Of a DNA stretch of 64,000 nt, positions 44,053-54,000 are shown piece by piece; the stretch's first letter is position 1; every line of letters starts with the position of its first letter. This DNA is from Lytechinus pictus. Lineage: Eukaryota. The stretch covers positions 49,600,001 to 49,664,000 of the forward strand of contig NC_087246.1 of NCBI RefSeq assembly GCF_037042905.1, given 5' to 3'. The notes beneath the pieces are model-generated. The model was not told where the DNA came from and searched no databases. It saw nothing but the letters and a program-made list of their open reading frames with translations. Both the position numbers and the translations under genes were made by a program.

Positions 44053-46818
44053 GTACTAGGACAGACTCTGGCGTTGCTAATTGGTCTTAAGAGTGTGATT
44101 CCAATAGTGTTATCTTCATAGCAACCCATCTACACAAGATCACGATTTAGAAAATCTACAAAAGTAACAATGTCTGGTGGTAACATACAAAACTTGAACT
44201 GGTTTTGAATCTCCTTTATAGAAAGTATAACAGGGTTTATCATTTCAAAAGGAAGAATTTTAAAAACTATTATGAACAGGCATTGTATATTTCACAGTAC
44301 ATGTATTTGAAATGTATACAAACAAACACCCTTTTTGCCAAGACAGGATTCCCGTTGTGAATTTTGCATCAAATGAGCAATAAATTACGTCCTATAATGA
44401 AATAAAGATGAATTTCACTTGTGATTACAACATACTTGGATGAAACTAAATAGGGCCAAACAGGGGGCATTCTCACTTTTGCATGGTATATGCATCATGT
44501 GGTACAGACTGAACATGAAATTTCACCATTAGCAGATAAATATACTACTAAAAAAGTCTTGGCCCAAGAGAATATTATGCAACTAGTACAATATACTTGA
44601 ATGACTGGAAGTTAACACGACCACAAAGACCCATTTCTAAAATTGACCATATTTTTCCAAAGGGATGCAAATATGTACCATCCATAACATGTTAACATTA
44701 AAGGGCATTACGTTTGTAAAATACCACTTTGATGTCTACAATTAACAATCATCACTTCTTAACCTATTCTGGTGGGGGAGGTGTGGCAAATAGGATCATT
44801 TTCAATTTGGAAATATCACATGGAGGGGGGGGGGGGGGGGAGATCAAGGTGCATTACATTTTAACCAGAACCAAGGAAAATAGTTTTTCAAAGGGTTGCA
44901 AAACCAAAAGAAAAATGGTGTACTTTTATCGACAAACTCACATTATATTCGACAAAACAAGTAACAATAGCACACACAAGTTTTAAGCAGTTCATGGCTC
45001 CTTAGTTCACAAATCTAGCAGAAGAAAGAACCACAATTTTCAACTCCATTTCAAATTTGAAATTTATCCAAAAAGCGGGAGAATGCGGTTTCTTTCCTTT
45101 TTCCTTAAATATGCACTAACATTTTAGACTACGAGGTGAATAAATACGGTTTTGAATGCTGTACAACACATGTAGTTTTCATATTCATTTTTTTTCCATC
45201 ATAAGAACGAAGGTTCACAACATCACATGTATTCTAACTTTTAAACAACACTCATAGATCATTTTATCATAATCAACAATCTTAGCACACTACTTGCTTC
45301 ATCGGAGCAGGTGGCAGATACATTTCGTATTTCTAATTAGACGACAGTTCTTCGGATTTCCTATTTACAACAAACTTTTTTTTCTTATGTCCTTTTTTCT
45401 TCATATATTACACTTTCTCTGAAGTCATACGCAAAGCTACTGTTAAATTCTGTACATTGTTCAACTGAACAAAGTCTTTGGTTTTAATCAAAACAAATTA
45501 TAAGGATGATAAACTGAAGCTCATGATAGGTGATATGTAAATAAAAATACCCAAATAAATCCTCAACACATGAATTTGAAAACACCTTTATAGACCAAGA
45601 CATTAAGCTAGTTCATATTGCCTTATATCTTCAGCGAATCTGGTTTCATGTCCATGATATACAGTACTTTAAGCAATTGTCCATGTCATTTTCATTCCAA
45701 GGTTGTAATAATCTGAGGCATGACTGTAAGATTAAAACCATTTTTCTTTCTCATTAAACAGGCAGCTTGAAGGGGTTACAGCATAGGATTTTAATTACAT
45801 ATGAACATGATTACCCTTCGTAATTTGATATATATATTATATAAATTTGTTACATAAATACTGATTCACATTCAGACACTGAATTAGTCCACACATACAT
45901 ATATCCTCATCCACAGATTACATATCATTTGCATTCTCAATTAGTTAATCATCACAATCATGACTCGCAGTGAGAGTACTACGCTGCTGTCAATCGTAAA
46001 TATCACGCCCTCAATCCGGAGTAAGTACAAAAAAACCTATTTCATGTTAAGCTGATTTTGTTTCAAGTCATTTCTGAGGTATCGCAGGTGTCTCATTAGC
46101 TCTTCGTTTCATCATACCGAAGCATTTTCTGCATCATGCCATGTACATAAAATTAAGTAATCATCCATGAATACTTCCATATTCATGATACTCAAAAAGA
46201 GATTAAAAGTTACAACTTCCAAAAAGAGATCAAATACTGGCTGATATACTCCAAAGCCAGACTCTAAGCTCTTTGCAAAACATAATTGGAATCCTTTGTA
46301 ATATCCAAATAATGACATTCCTATATAACAATGCCAAAAGTACATCCTTTAAAAAAAAATGGTGTAGCACACCATTTCAAAATTTACCCTGTCGTAAATA
46401 AATTGCCTTTTGGGGGATGGGATGCAGAGAGAGTTCAAGTTGATAACTAGCTGGGAAAATAAGCACCAAAAATGAAGAAAATAACACGAGATGAATGAAT
46501 CTACAGCATGCACAAAAAATAACCCTGATGGAAGCAAGAAATAACAAATAAACAAAATCATCTGATATCATTCCTTTCCTTAAAAAAATGTACAACTTTG
46601 ACAATTTTGTCATACTAACAGGTCTCCCTCAAGAGAAAACGCATATATGTATATATAAACATACAAAATAACATCGCAAAACCAAGGTCTTGGAAGAAAA
46701 GAAATTGGAAGCTCTCCTGACTAAAGTCACGTAGGACTTTCCCACAAATGACATATAAAGGTTTAATCAAGATTGTGTGTAAAAAAAGGTGGGTGAATCA
46801 AACTCAAATAATTCAAGA

Positions 46819-49800
46819 CTATGAACTCAATTGTGGTGCAACAGGTGGGGTTCTGCTGTTGGATCTTTCTAGGGCTAACTCCTTGTTCTGGGCTAATTCT
46901 CTTTTCAGGGCCATCTCCCTGGAGAAGGCTTCTTCTCTATTCAGAGCGATTTCACGGTTGAGAGCCTCTTCTCTTTTAATTGTCATTTCACGCGAAAGAG
47001 CCTCTTCCCTGCTGAGGGCCATCTCACGAGAGAGAGCTTCCTCCCTGCTAAGGGCCATCTCACGAGAGAGAGCTTCTTCCCTGTCACGAGAGAGCACCTC
47101 TTCCCTGGTATGGGCCATTTCGCGAGCTTCTTCTCTACTATGGGCCCTCTCAAGAGATAGGACCTCTTCCCTGCTATGGGCCCTCTCACGAGATAGCACC
47201 TCTTCCCTGCTATGGGCCCTCTCACGAGATAGCGCCTCTTCCCTGCTATGGGCCAGCTCGCGAGAAAATGCCTCCTCTCGGTTCATTGCAATTTCACGGG
47301 CGAGAGCTTCTTCTCTGTTAAGAGCAATCTCATGGTTGAGTGCCTCATCTCTGCTCAGGACCATTTCACGGTGGCGCTCTGCTTCTCGGCTGTATGCTGC
47401 CTCCCTGCTCTCTGCAGATGGAGCCAAGCTGTTCCTCATGATGACTGACCCAGAATCTTGAAGATGGAGGCTAGTGGGCTGCTGAATGACTGAGATCTCA
47501 TTGGCCTTTGAGTTTGCAGCTGCTGCGGCAAAGCCATTCAGAAGATGAGGAGGAGGGTAGTGGTAAAAAGCACCCTCTGCGAAACCTGGGTGCATGCCAA
47601 AGAGATCCCCACGGAAGATCTCTCCTTCTTTGGGGCTGACAATGAATGGAGGTTCAACAGCGATGCGCCGTCCCCGTCGTCCACCTCCATTCCACATATG
47701 GGTGCCAAGATGAACCTTAAGGTTGCCTTTGGTGGTGAAGGCTCGGCTGCAGATGTGGCAACGGAATGGTTTCTCTCCTGTATGGGTGCGCATATGAATT
47801 TCCAGGGCACTGTTGGTCTGGAACTGTTTCCCACAGACAGAGCAAGAGTGCCTGAATTGACTGCGCTTGTTGGCTTCTTCTGGAGAGACACTCAAGCTGC
47901 GCTTCAGGGGTGGGGTTTGGGAGTTGGTAGTGGTTGTCTGCTGTAGAGGGAGTTCCTGGCTAATTATTTTTGGCATGACAGGAGATTTGGCATTGGAGTT
48001 TCCAGGGATGTTAATCGGTGAATCATATCTAGGCATGGGCATATCTCTGATTTTGTGTGTAAGCATGTGCTGCTTGAGGTTACCTTTGGTTGAGAACCCC
48101 TTGCTGCAGACATCACAGCGGAATGGACGCTCCTTGGTGTGGCTGCGATAGTGGATATTCAGTGCACTGGTACATGCAAACACCTTTCCGCAGTAGTGGC
48201 AGGTTGTGTTTGGTCTCATAGGCCTTCTGCCTCCAAGTTGCATGCTAGGGACACTCATCAGCAGGCCAGCAGATGTCATATTTGGCTTTACATCTTCAAG
48301 ATAATGACCATCATGTTGGTAGTAGCCTGGCAAATCACCAGTATCTCTAGAATGTGGAGGAATGTTTTCCTGAGGAGTTCCCTTTGGTCTTAAATCAAGT
48401 GCTCCGCTCATATCAGTATCGTTCTCCTCATGTTTATAGTTCCCATCATATTCTTCATCAGCCATGCTAGATGAGATAGATTCACGTCCATCATGGTTAT
48501 ACATGGCCATATTGATATTTCGATTTTCATCTTCAGACATCATTGATTTTGTATCAACACTGTGTCCAGGGCTTGGAGCAGTAGAGGAATCTCCATTTGC
48601 CATGGAACTTACAGGCTGCAATCCAAGGATACTTGGCATGAAAGGTCTGCATTGGACCTGACCTGTCTCTTTTTCGTCATCAGATGCCCGACTTTCAGAT
48701 GCATGGTTTTCTGCTGGTGGCGAATTGACATCTGATGGGAGGGTACCATCTTCAGGCTTGTCACCTTCAGGAAATGTATCATCTGGGAGTTCTCCTTCCT
48801 CAGGTGTTGGAAGGTCATTACGCTCATCCACATCCATGTGGTTGTCTTCACCAACTGTCTTTTCTATATCATCTTCATCATCCTTCATGTGCATTTCTTC
48901 AGACCTTGGATGATCCAGATGTGGAGGTATTGTCATCCCTTCTGCTGCATGAAGGCGCAAATGCTGTTGTAGCACAAGTGGGTTGCTGAAGCGCTTCTCA
49001 CAGATGGGACAGTCATGGAGAATTCTAATTGGTCCTTTACTTCTATGGACAGCATAATGTGTCTTGAGGTTCCCTTTGGTAGTAAATGAACGACCACAGA
49101 TTTTACATCTGAAGGGGCGTTCACCGGTATGTGTGCGATAGTGAAGCTGGAGAGAGCTCTTGCAACTCAGAACCCGGTGACAGATGACACATTGGTTTGG
49201 GTCAGTTATTTTCTGCTCGATGTTCTCCACTAATTGCTGGAGTTTGGATGTTTCAGATGCCCGCATACCAGCCTCGGCAAGGTTAGCCAATGATGGAGGT
49301 GTTTCAGGTTTGACTGGGTCTACGTCTGCAGCACTTTTGGAAGACTCAAATGGCACAGTACCGTTCTGGCCAAATGCCATTCTCGGAAAACCAGTATATG
49401 GTAGGGGATATCCAGAAGACATCGGAATACCACCTGCAGACATGACAGGGAAGACATTGGAGGACAGGGCAATGGAAGGAGAGGTGGATGTAATTTGCCT
49501 CCTTTCATTTGGGGATAAACTTCCAGACTGACTTGTTGATGGACTGTCATGATCATCATCACCATTCCTGTCAGTGCTGTTGTACTGCTTCATCTCTTCC
49601 TCCTGATAATGCCGAGAGCTGTCTGCCATACTTCCTTCAGATTCTCTCGGGGAGGTGCTCTTGGATGGTTGATGAATTAACATGTCTTCTTCATACATAG
49701 CTCTGGCTTGGTCATTTGGAATGGTGGAAATGGGAATCTGGTGGATTGAAGGTGGTTGGAGAGGCTGGTCCATAAGAGGTGGTGTTGGTGGATGGTGTCT

Positions 49801-51083
49801 GATATCCATATGGATGTGCGGGTACCTAGACTGGTGGCGCTGGAAATGTACCTTCAGGTTACCCTTGGTAGAAAATCGGTTCCCGCAGATGTTGCACTTA
49901 TATGGTCGTTCACCGGTGTGGGAGCGAATGTGGATCTGGAGGGCACTGTCACTTCCAAATACTTTGTGACAGAATCTGCATTTGTGACGGAAGAAGGGAT
50001 CATCAGCACTGAATTTGGGGTCAAAAACTGAGACATTGGGGGGCTTCGGTTTTTGGTTACCAGAAAGCAAACTCTCATGATAAGGGAGTGGTGGCGGAAT
50101 TCCAAGAGGGTTGAGTGGCATATGTCGGTTGGCATGCTGTTGAAGCATCTCAAAAGGGGACTTCTGGCTAGGCAGATGGAATGGTGGTGGTAGAGGTGGC
50201 AGCAACCTTCCTTGAGCATGCATGGCCTCTATAGCAGATTGTTGCACAGCTGATGCTGCTGCAGCTCCTGCAGGAGATAATATATGTGGTGGATGAATCA
50301 TACCAGGTATGGTAGGGATTGGTACAATGGGTGTGGATGGAATGCTAAATGTGGTAGCAGTGTTTGTGTCAGAACTGGGGGCTGGTTCAGTTTTGCTTTC
50401 TAAAAGCTGTTCATCAAGTTCTGGCGATTCCTGACTCCCTGAGGAATCTTTTGGTTCTTGCTTCGGTTGATTTTGTTGCTGAAGCTGTTGAAGTTGTTGG
50501 TGCTGAATCTGCTGCCTTTGTTGCTGGGCAGTTAAGTGGTTGATCTGATGCTGGATGCTCTGGATCATATGAAGTTGGTGAAGATGCTGCTGTTGAAGGG
50601 CATACAGCTGTTCTCGTATCATCACTACATCAGTGTGCCCAGGAACCATGGCAGATTCTCGAGGAAACTGTGCCACAGCATATGGAGTGTTTTCAAGGTT
50701 GTCCAAGGAAACATTTGAAGGTGGGAGACTTGGGTTTGGGCTTTGATCTGAAGACCTGCCAGGTTGTTCATCCTGCTGCTGAGCTTTTCCTTCAGAGACA
50801 TAGTTTGGTTCAACAGATTTCCTGCTATCAGGGGTCATGGAACGATCAGAGGCAGTGTCCTGGTCTTTCTCAGACATCCTGCTAGAATCTTCCATCTGCT
50901 CCTGCCCTTCATTGAAGATCATCACGACCTGCTTCTTGATACAGTTCTGCTTATGCTTTACAAAGTCGGCAAAGACAACAAACTCCCCACGGCAGTTGCC
51001 ACAGACATGGACATCTCCGATAACTTCGTCATGTTCGTCTGAGTTCATGGCATCTAGAGGCTGGTTGATGCCTTCAGATGAAC
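46819..51083 (-). CDS. SALL: Spalt-like / Sal-like C2H2 zinc-finger transcription factor, large terminal coding exon (~1420 aa); first exon outside window
   Basis: N-terminal C2HC finger (~50941-51009), Q-rich multimerisation segment ([24 protein letters not shown]), KPPNVSV, four ZF clusters (2+3+2+2 fingers) each with a Sal box F(S/T)[31 protein letters not shown]. Phase-1 acceptor TTCTCCCATGTACAG at 51084; TAG stop at 46819-46821. The ORF-track start at 51141 is intronic. Confidence 0.97.
46867..47406 (-). repeat. Coding 18-bp / 6-aa tandem repeat (RE-x-A-L/H-S/N) in the Sall C-terminus
   Basis: 29 full hexads plus REEA and RD partial units = 180 aa; 12-aa super-period ([12 protein letters not shown]). 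Confidence 0.95.
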
Positions 51084-54000
51084 CTGTACATGGGAGAACA
51101 AGACGAGAAAATGATTTAATAAGAATTTCACAAATCATCAAAAAGCTTTTTTATATATATATATATACTTTCAATTGAAGTACATAATGTACAGTGTACA
51201 TCAAAACAAGTACAATCTTGCAATTATGGGCTATATACTTTTAATCTCACTCTAAATCTGGTGAAGTAATTTAATTTTTATGATAAGAGGACAAAGGGCA
51301 AAACTTGGTTGTTTTAAGGAATTAATGTCACAGATTAAAAATAAATGACTTTAGACATCTGACATTCTTCAATCAAGAAATTAAGTACATATAGAAAGTG
51401 CTTGCAATTGACAGAAGGGTGGGAAATGTTAATAACATGAACAGAGGCCGTTCCAACAACTACATATGAAAGAAACAAATGTTATCATAGAAAACGTCCT
51501 TCACTAGGCAGCTATACAAACACCAAGTTTCACCCTTGTCAAATGCTTGTGTAATTCTATTTCACAAACTGATAAGAGGTGCCCTCTGAGGAAAGAACTA
51601 AACCTCATTTCCTTCTGAACATTTTTTTTTCTGTTTTGGTTTATGTTCTGTCAGGAGGCTTGCATCAGTACAACTGGTAATCATTTCATTTTGACAGTGC
51701 ACTCAGTAACCTAACATGACCAGTTAATCATTCAATTGCACTTATTTTTACGAGGTTGACTGAAATAAGCTTTCAATAAAAAGGATCAGTACATATTTGA
51801 AATGAACTACTAATAATAGAAAACTTTCCCCCATGATGTAAGGTACAAAACAAAATTATCTAAAACAAGCTATGAAATAATCAAATGTCTCAATTAAAAC
51901 AATAACATCACTATCATTCTGACTTACAAGTGATATGATGCATGAAAGGCAAGTGAAATGTAAAATTCACGTCAGTAGAAAGATGAAGAGAACTTGACAA
52001 AACTCTTAAGTGTACAACACAAGCTGAAAGCAATCCAAGTAAAATATCACTATGGACAGTGTCAAAACATTAGTGTACAAAATTCAACATATCCAGTTTG
52101 AGGTCCAATTTATGTACAGGCTCCGAGATTTCTTTCCTCTTCCAGTACTAATCCACAAAAACAACTCAAAAGTGAGTAAAATATGTTTGTTTTTCTACAT
52201 AACTGGTAAAAAGTCTAATGTTCTCTTAAATGACAAAAAAGAGCCAAGTCCATTTCAGTTCATTTCCTCTTCAACACAACTGATTCCTTTGCATGGGTAG
52301 ATCGGATGATGCCTGTCAATTGAACAGCAAATGCGATAAAAAAATTGTGAGAATTGAAAGTTGTCTATTCAAACAGAATATTATTTGACAGTATCTATTC
52401 ACTGAAGCATGAAATTGTGCACATGACTACATCACTTCAGCGAAATTCAGATCAGGGAATCAGAGATAACCAAAGAGAAACGCTTGCTATCCCCTCATCA
52501 TGTAATCTCCTAGAGATCTCTCAGCGACAAGCTTGTTACCGTTCTCCGGGCGGGAAGAGAGCCGAGGAGCATCAGCTACGCATGTTTACAGTCAGAATAT
52601 CATCGCATTTATGGGTGACACATCCCCGTATATTGGCTGGCTGGATTATTATGATAACAATAATAATCAAACATTGGTGAGCTCTCCAATGCATAACATT
52701 ATGATATGAAAAGCCTCAGCAATCTTTTGTCGCTCTGCCATCAACTGACAAAAGCGTAAATAGACTTTTTTTTTTCTTATCCCTCTTGTAAATAGCATGC
52801 TATGATAGCAGTGAATGGCTGAGTGGGTCGGCTGTTGGTCGTGATAACTGAAGTGACACACTAAACCCTCGGGGCACAAATTAATACGAGTGGCGCAGTG
52901 ATGCCATAGATATGATCACATCATTCATCAAATATTAAAGTGGTAGCGTCAAAATTCATCTAATCGCTTCAATTACTTTGTGGTAGCATTTTTTAGGGTT
53001 GCCCATTTAAATTCAGCTGATAATGCAATATCATTTTTCATCTATTGGATTGGTGTGCGATGGTAATTGGTGATTTTGTTAAAGTCACCCTTCTCATGTA
53101 GAACAAAAGCTCTTGTCGTAGATTGAATACACGATTTCAGCTCAAATTGCATCGATGATGAAAATATATACAAGCCTAAAGTTTTCAACCCTTTTTAATG
53201 GCTCACACAAAAATGAATACCCTTTAAATCAACACTAATGTAAGAGGAATAAAGACCCCTTATCATTTAACATCATTCCTTTGTGAGAAAATGTCATCTT
53301 CATTTATTTTGCTGCCATTTCCTTTTGTCATGAAACTGTGAAAAATGGGTGAATTCATCATTTAATGGGACATAAATTTCTTTTATGCCCATGACATTCC
53401 CAATATCTGGTTGATACATCATACAGGAGTGTTTGAAGAAGATATTAGACACAGCCATGATGATATTTCATCTCAAAATGACTATGGTGATTCGGTTAAG
53501 AAAAGGGGGCACATCAGTTAGCTGTTCTCCTTACGTGTACCTCATTATCAGATGCCGCTTGCAGAATTTTTTTCATGACAAGAGCCGTGAAAGACGGCAA
53601 AATGAGATTGGTATGATTTATGACCACTGGAGGAGCAGCTTAACAAAATTGAATATGAACAATAAAACGTGATATCGCATTTGGAAATGAATTTTCTAAT
53701 GATTGATATGATCATTATGTTTGCCGGCAGAAACACCTGCTTTTTTCCCCTCCTCCACTTTAATGATACATTTTCATATCATCATTTCGATATTGAATAA
53801 ATGAAGAAGACCTCTGCGAATATGCAATTAAAATTTCTGATTATCATCTCATAAATTATTGACTCGTGGGTGATACCTCACGTTTGAAATGCATTGCATG
53901 ATGGATGTCATTTATTTGATGATTAAGAAAAACATCTTTTAATCTTCTGATTCTATTAGCAATGAAAAGGATATGCAAAGTATAATCCTTTACTATGAAT

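Follow-up and report, generated by a model that had tools for sequence, protein, structure and literature searches.

We describe a sea-urchin-specific extension at the C-terminus of Sall, encoded on the minus strand of a stretch of 64,000 nucleotides (nt) of the Lytechinus pictus genome (contig NC_087246.1, positions 49,600,001 to 49,664,000; hereafter the window, in which positions are given). Behind the last conserved motifs of the protein the reading frame continues into a tandem array of six-residue units and ends in a short non-repetitive peptide. This tail is a translated part of Sall and is present in the spliced mRNA. The pattern of substitutions indicates that it has been kept in frame under purifying selection since before the split of Lytechinus and Strongylocentrotus, as strongly as the rest of the protein. 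It is predicted to be helical, and we propose that it may act as a rod that offers many contact sites. For this explanation as a whole we would put the probability slightly above one half (about 0.55).

The Sall gene and its transcript

The gene in the window can be recognised as the single urchin orthologue of Sall/Spalt by its C2H2 fingers, Sal-boxes, Q-rich stretch, NuRD-type N-terminus, orthologue matches and position in a tree. The open reading frame (ORF) has a Pfam zf-C2H2 match (1.6e-35) and, as is characteristic of Sall/Spalt zinc fingers, four copies of the Sal-box F[ST]TKGNLK (ORF residues 423, 686, 1016 and 1135); the Q-rich stretch that is also typical of the family lies at residues ~177-225. 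Its best matches are echinoderm and vertebrate sal-like proteins, which together with the tree supports orthology. Exon 2 alone encodes the tail together with the Q-rich region and all four pairs of Sal-box zinc fingers. The N-terminal 12-residue NuRD-recruiting motif of Sall/Spalt proteins (MSRRKQAKPQH) is encoded outside the window by exon 1 (G000:C2:49703048 and upstream, locus L004), which encodes MMSRRKQAKPQHIGSERNPLTSIEN and is followed by a GT donor. The true numbering of the protein, 1446 residues in total, is the ORF numbering used here plus 6.

Evidence on the mRNA comes from contigs of four public runs, two from L. pictus and two from a close relative, which we compared with positions 45250-51200. 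Note that the run records do not state that they hold spliced mRNA, and that contig data are blind to rare isoforms, expression level and strand. In all four runs, contigs part from the window sequence at 51084 and go on with an identical stretch of 30 letters, the end of exon 1; this extension occurs once in the genome, 52 kb upstream, and encodes the conserved Sall N-terminus. From these joints between exon 1 and exon 2 it follows that the runs hold spliced mRNA, and the GT-AG intron places that mRNA on the minus strand. The contigs that join the two exons span the zinc fingers, the entire tail and at least 2.1 kb of the 3' untranslated region (3'UTR) in two Lytechinus species, with one contig extending 581 nt further below 45250. 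The L. pictus contigs are broken only at 47162-47233, as expected where 36/72-nt units are nearly identical, and the gap is bridged by short overlapping pieces.

A sequence-only reading of this DNA had considered that transcripts might splice out the repeat or end before it. We looked for such transcripts and found that the spliced contigs run through the repeat instead; no splice joint that removes the tail was present in the contigs of the four runs. The sole joint inside the tail, a 72-nt skip (47134 to 47207) in the contigs of the relative, has no splice-site ends and is also found in the L. variegatus genome, so that it represents a species difference and not splicing. A retrocopy as the source of the contigs could be ruled out, as both the exon 1 tag and the repeat DNA are single-copy in the genome.

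The tail sequence is already present in RefSeq models, and that of XP_054770419.1 (Lytechinus pictus) is identical to the tail in the window. This model starts (window 51084-51141) with in-frame intron sequence upstream of the exon 2 acceptor and is without MSRRKQAKPQH, whereas in the mRNA contigs exon 2 is linked to the motif-encoding exon that lies 52 kb upstream. The Sall models of Lytechinus variegatus have an odd Asp-rich N-terminus and look similarly mis-started. The window DNA is 95% identical to the L. variegatus chromosome across 20 kb.

Structure of the hexad array

A linker of 24 residues separates NEISVIQ from the array and contains SVIMR, which the comparison of tails marks as the last ancestral landmark ahead of the repeat (Table 1). 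The array has the consensus S-R-E-[E/M/I/R]-A-L. Position 4 alternates between Glu and Met, Ile, Leu or Arg, which creates a super-period of 12 residues (36 nt). The autocorrelation of residue identity is 0.51 at lag 6 and 0.59 at lag 12, against a maximum of 0.24 in shuffled sequences (n = 2000). Tandem Repeats Finder reports a period of 36 with 12.3 copies, and a period of 18 nt at the 3' end of the array only (46866-46911). In L. pictus the array comprises 26 regular hexads, one irregular zone of 24 residues and a final ER, that is, ~30 hexad equivalents; 45% of its residues are charged (net charge -10), and Pro and Gly are both entirely missing. The repeat of 29 hexads that the sequence-only reading had placed at 46867-47406 is the same feature within 3 nt (47409-46864) and about one unit off our recount, and the 12-residue super-period and the lack of Pro and Gly that it had described were found as well.

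Codon choice follows the type of the hexad: hexads of the REEA type use AGC with AGG or AGA, those of the REMA type TCT with CGT. A typical 12-mer is thus encoded by AGC AGG GAR GAR GCN CTN in one hexad and TCT CGT GAG ATG GCC CTN in the other, and where the two hexads of a 12-mer have the same residue their codons differ at 29 of 38 positions. No path of single synonymous steps leads from Ser AGC to Ser TCT. Because paired hexads draw on different Ser and Arg codon families, the hexad symmetry is a property of the protein. The varied Arg codons that had been pointed out before are there (AGG 12, CGT 9, AGA 7, CGC 3 and CGA 2), but their variation is systematic by hexad type.

It had also been suggested that the broken units restore the register between them. 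This is true of L. pictus and also of L. variegatus, but it does not hold as a general rule: Strongylocentrotus purpuratus has one hexad of five residues that is not compensated, and a more distant urchin, P0003 (ENA assembly ERZ26222911), needs no compensation, since its 44 hexads (SRDEAL-SRExAL) are in perfect register throughout.

The end peptide that follows the array contains RTPP[V/I]AP (RTPPVAP in the window, RTPPIAP in P0003), which fits [RK]xxPxxP, the pattern of class I SH3 ligands, and also includes a Thr-Pro site. The peptide is identical across L. pictus, L. variegatus and S. purpuratus, and P0003 matches it at 10 of the 14 residues. Between L. pictus and S. purpuratus there are 3 synonymous changes and the rate of non-synonymous substitution (dN) is 0. 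In its conservation the end peptide is on par with the zinc fingers; starfish Sall is without it.

Table 1. Features of the Sall locus in the window. ORF residues refer to the minus-strand ORF of 1440 codons.
Feature	Position	Strand	Remark
Minus-strand ORF, 1440 codons	51141-46819	-	from the ORF list
Splice acceptor AG of intron 1 (~52 kb)	51084..51085	-	mRNA contigs leave the genome at 51084
Sall coding exon 2	46822..51083	-	stop codon at 46819-46821
NEISVIQ motif, ORF residues 1214-1220	47482..47502	-	common to Sall from urchins to human
SVIMR motif, ORF residues 1232-1236	47434..47448	-	from tail comparison; SVIMK in starfish
Hexad array, 182 residues (ORF 1245-1426)	46864..47409	-	periodicity, selection, predicted helix
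Degenerate N-terminal edge units, ORF 1245-1298	47248..47409	-	align one-to-one with S. purpuratus
Recently amplified trio of 36-nt units (SREE[A/V]L-S[R/L]ERAH), ORF 1299-1334	47140..47247	-	92-97% DNA identity
Irregular zone, 24 residues, ORF 1335-1358	47068..47139	-	hexad register lost, then regained; also in L. variegatus
Regular C-terminal hexad block, ORF 1359-1426	46864..47067	-	final 32 residues near-invariant across urchins
Non-repeat end peptide, 14 residues	46822..46863	-	conserved among urchins
3'UTR, minimum extent	45250..46818	-	mRNA contigs continuous from the repeat to 45250 and past it
Antisense ORF, 237 aa	46748..47461	+	mirror by-product of the repeat, not a gene

Selection and turnover of units

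We compared non-synonymous and synonymous substitution rates (dN/dS) between L. pictus and L. variegatus and between L. pictus and S. purpuratus. In the first pair, dN/dS is 0.10 for the repeat (8 synonymous and 3 non-synonymous changes) and 0.12 for the body of the protein. In the second pair it is 0.11 for the body (dS about 0.5), 0.075 for the N-terminal edge of the repeat (dS 0.73) and 0.02 for its C-terminal edge, and the excess of synonymous changes in the repeat edges has a binomial P of ~1e-10. Frameshifts, stops or neutral dN/dS in the orthologues had been named beforehand as signs that would speak against a constrained tail; we looked for them and found the frame kept, with dN/dS of 0.02-0.10. 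The tail is also kept in frame in the more distant P0003. Among the paralogous 36-nt units of the array the median DNA identity is 67%, and the proportions of synonymous and non-synonymous differences (pS 0.71, pN 0.23) mean that most units are old and have been held similar at the protein level.

Recent gain or loss of units also occurs, as follows from the trio of nearly identical units and from an in-frame block of 72 nt in this stretch (24 residues, 47135-47206) that is present in L. pictus and not in L. variegatus, neither in its genome (locus L001) nor in mRNA contigs, from two independent studies. The edges of the array align one-to-one between the genera, and the middle does not. A homogenised centre with fixed edges is the usual pattern of tandem arrays. 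In its head-to-tail units, varying copy number, homogenised centre and conserved edges the array behaves as a coding tandem repeat with gain and loss of units, and the alignments indicate that it grows and shrinks by 36-nt or 72-nt units, in frame, while the edges and the end peptide stay fixed. Thus, of the earlier claim that protein constraint explains the repeat better than recent slippage, the constraint stands, and the choice between the two does not. A dispersed satellite or a transposon as the origin was rejected, since neither the repeat DNA nor its protein occurs a second time in the 812-Mb genome.

Distribution of the tail

The tail was found in Sall of four urchins, with ~21 hexads in S. 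purpuratus, ~26 in L. variegatus (where it is 24 residues shorter than in L. pictus), ~30 in L. pictus and 44 in P0003. It is absent from Sall of three starfish, three sea cucumbers, two crinoids, two hemichordates and human, the last of these in line with the earlier remark that vertebrate Sal proteins are not known to have such a tail. The three starfish proteins terminate ~20-25 residues past SVIMK. We built a tree of Sall from the protein cut after ISVIQ, that is, with the tail excluded. In this tree P0003 falls within the urchin clade with 100/100 support, outside Strongylocentrotus and Lytechinus, and in path length it lies three times as far from the window as S. purpuratus does. The distribution among the sampled proteins and the tail-less tree together place the origin of the tail in the urchin lineage, after the split from sea cucumbers and before a split far older than that of the sampled camarodonts.

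An exhaustive phmmer search of 1.84 billion representative proteins returned urchin Sall as the only true relatives of the tail. The remaining 36 matches are unrelated proteins that carry tandem repeats of a six-residue type of their own and are not homologues. Charged repeats of this type are seen, for example, in P0121, P0131, P0135, P0145 and others (RERALQ-REQALR or SEEAVA-SEDAQE); as so many unrelated proteins have them, such repeats must arise repeatedly. When the tail by itself (227 aa) or the final 593 aa was used as the query, word-index protein searches gave zero matches, including no fragments from further urchins. Searches of Pfam, PDB sequences and Atlas (ESM Atlas) with the tail gave chance-level matches only, namely phiX174 protein H (E 0.12) and DUF5804, under its cut-off. 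A survey of bilaterian Sall domains from 2018 makes no mention of such a tail (PMC5892016), and we found no description of it in our search of the sea urchin Sall literature.

In sea cucumbers, Sall (P0006, P0007, P0009) has an unrelated tail of ~200 residues after NEISVIQ, which is rich in Ser and Pro and has the conserved end ...SASRMVDQL[QE][AP]QRV. Two echinoderm classes thus seem to have lengthened the Sall C-terminus independently of each other.

Predicted structure

Without an alignment, AlphaFold2 predicts one continuous helix over residues 30-215 of the tail (ORF 1243-1428) with pLDDT of 96-98. Its 186 residues would measure ~28 nm, in agreement with the ~27-nm single helix proposed from the sequence; for P0003 the predicted helix covers residues 53-318 (266 residues, ~40 nm). 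A period of 6.0 is the dominant signal of hydrophobicity in all four urchins, and the hydrophobic moment at 100 degrees is 0.01 in the window and 0.01-0.18 across urchins, compared with 1.01 at 102.9 degrees for a model heptad. Both agree with the earlier suggestion that a period of six gives three equivalent stripes on a helix with 18 residues per 5 turns. Computed from the consensus and taken modulo 120 degrees, the hexad positions fall at 0 (L), 20 (A), 40 (E/M), 60 (E), 80 (R) and 100 (S) degrees, which leads to three straight Leu ridges with Ala and Ser at their flanks and bands of Glu and Arg between them. Taking the models and this geometry together, the array quite probably forms one continuous alpha-helix, ~19-40 nm long depending on the species, on which these ridges would be straight and narrow.

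Proposed function and alternatives

What could such a helix be for? Our proposal, which is tentative and to which we would give somewhat less than even odds, is that the tail is a helical rod of repeated contact sites for multivalent lateral association. Each 12-residue unit would be one contact site, and the rod would work through many individually weak, lateral associations along the three ridges, either with other Sall tails or with a repeated partner. On chromatin it could in this way add to the clustering that Sall owes to its Q-rich multimeriser, and it would also keep the conserved RTPPxAP end peptide at a distance from the fingers that bind DNA; the form of this end suggests that the rod may present a docking peptide as well. 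The contact-site reading draws on the positions S, R, E, A and L of the unit, which are conserved between species and among old paralogous units, while the number of units varies about two-fold (21-44). A pure spacer would be expected to keep its composition and length, a ruler its length, and a bulk polyampholyte needs no fixed Ala and Leu at positions 5 and 6, so that contact sites fit best.

There are several points that weigh against this proposal. With only one Leu per 18 residues, each ridge would make a weak interface. Well-mixed charges with a net charge of -10 speak for a soluble monomer, and the uncompensated register shift of one residue in S. purpuratus would break long in-register pairing. 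In an ESMFold2 run of a two-copy complex, confidence in each chain's own fold was only ~59; the evidence for the helix is therefore the single-sequence AlphaFold2 runs and the composition, which make it likely, not certain. Furthermore, only four urchin sequences were sampled, P0003 as protein only.

A bolder version, which we hold to be quite unlikely, is that the hexad array is a new alpha-helical assembly module, which arose and was fixed in the urchin lineage. Each tail, as a straight helix of 18 residues per 5 turns with three equivalent ridges, could then touch as many as three others, and Sall would assemble on chromatin into a lateral lattice or gel that is tunable by the number of units. 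If true, this would be a principle of oligomerisation distinct from heptad coiled coils.

Two further roles were considered and rejected. A ladder of CK2 phosphorylation sites (S-x-x-E) would not be conserved, because in S. purpuratus the REEA-type hexads begin with Asn and those that start with Ser have Met at +3. A DNA-binding helix like the STPR repeats of FMBP-1 (PMC4856987) was set aside given the net charge of the array, -10.

The main rival of the contact rod, in our view an unlikely one, is an inert and monomeric semi-rigid stalk, a spacer resembling the single alpha-helix (SAH) domains, which would do nothing but keep the RTPPxAP end peptide at a distance of 20-40 nm from the zinc fingers. 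A long predicted helix with no amphipathic seam would suit a stalk, and so would the well-mixed charges, the register slip that S. purpuratus tolerates and an end peptide that is conserved in all four urchins and has not changed its residues between L. pictus and S. purpuratus. However, spacers usually conserve composition and not sequence, and here every position of the unit is constrained (omega 0.02-0.10); the two-fold difference in length between species also speaks against a ruler. SAH domains consist of ~80% E, K or R and have a dense network of salt bridges (PMC5812594), whereas these residues make up a fraction of 0.44 of the tail. For the salt bridges (i/i+3 and i/i+4) the cut-off is a SAH score of at least 0.25 of that of an EEEEKKK repeat. 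By a crude proxy the tail has 0.11 possible bridges per residue, compared with 1.68 for E4K4, which is ~0.07 of the maximum. The single helix proposed earlier thus does not hold up as an ER/K SAH. In addition, 36% of the tail is non-polar, and SAH heptads with three or more Ala are reported to aggregate (PMC5812594).

It had also been suggested that the tail is an R/E mixed-charge domain that targets condensates, which would make it a low-complexity region that directs Sall to nuclear condensates, for example speckles. R and E are indeed its commonest charged residues, the copy number is variable, and the ratio of 36 positive to 46 negative charges (1:1.28) lies within the 1:0.7-1.3 of the published definition of arginine-enriched mixed-charge domains. 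The same definition asks for a 60-residue window in which 0.7 or more of the residues are charged (bioRxiv 10.1101/771592), whereas the tail reaches a maximum of 0.50, or of 0.63 if every Ser is counted as phosphorylated. Moreover, it is predicted to be a helix and not disordered, and its net charge is negative, while Greig et al. tied speckle cohesion to Arg enrichment and net positive charge (bioRxiv 10.1101/771592). We therefore consider this explanation improbable.

The chances of a neutral coding minisatellite, prone to slippage, in frame by chance and without a function, are very small. Its 36-nt period, the 72-nt difference between congeners and the trio of units with 92-97% identity would be in keeping with this idea, but it does not account for dN/dS of 0.02-0.10 at dS of 0.5-0.7 (P ~1e-10), for the frame and end peptide retained in four urchins, or for old units that are near synonymous saturation and still similar as protein. 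That the signal belongs to the plus-strand ORF of 237 aa and not to Sall has next to no probability: this ORF is open in all three species with omega below 1, but it has its wobble positions in common with the sense frame and so inherits both its openness and its apparent constraint (antisense frames of coding repeats can in this way mimic conserved genes), its dN/dS of 0.15-0.21 is 2-10 times the sense value, the mRNA is spliced GT-AG on the minus strand, and on either side the sense frame runs unbroken into conserved Sall motifs. A neutral repeat, an antisense gene and an untranslated sequence are essentially excluded.

As a developmental regulator Sall is deeply conserved, and its domain plan has been treated as fixed across bilaterians; here one animal class has added a domain of 130-270 residues and retained it under strong selection. 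The tail is a clean natural case of a protein domain that was born through repeat expansion and then constrained. Should the three-ridge helix self-assemble, it would be of interest to protein designers; otherwise it is a lineage-specific appendage of moderate interest. In L. pictus it would be possible to delete the tail and score the embryos.

Comparison with known systems

The window gene shares with the Sall/Spalt proteins (vertebrate SALL1-4, Drosophila Salm and Salr) the MSRRKQAKPQH N-terminus, the Q-rich region, the Sal-box finger pairs and the C-terminal NEISVIQ. It differs from them in the hexad array and the RTPPxAP end, which no other sampled Sall has outside the urchins.

The tail itself fits no definition of a heptad coiled coil, an ER/K SAH or an arginine mixed-charge domain; its periodicity is unusual and very regular, and no curated family fits it. 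With coiled coils (heptad 7/2, hendecad 11/3) it has in common a composition that favours helices and regularly spaced Leu. On the other hand, its period is 6.0 and not 3.5-3.67, and it would show three equivalent stripes where coiled coils have a single seam. Like the ER/K SAH domains of myosin VI and X, INCENP and the KER region of CAF-1, it is predicted to be a long single helix that has much Glu and Arg, lacks a hydrophobic seam and sits between a folded domain on one side and a terminal element on the other. Unlike them, it has approximately one E-to-R i+4 pair per 12 residues and a large non-polar share, and it follows a strict 6/12-residue repeat, whereas the charge pattern of SAH domains is loose.

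The mixed-charge domains of, for example, U1-70K and CPSF6 resemble the tail in that Arg and acidic residues repeatedly stand side by side, positive and negative charges are nearly balanced and the length varies; the tail differs in its charged fraction of 0.45-0.50, its predicted helix in place of disorder and its net negative charge. In composition the tail comes closest to trichohyalin, whose tandem-repeat rod is rich in Glu, Arg and Leu (PMC2119783). There is no sequence relationship between the two, however: trichohyalin is cytoplasmic and structural, with longer units and much Gln, whereas the tail is appended to a nuclear factor that binds DNA, and its 6/12-residue unit has much Ala and Ser.

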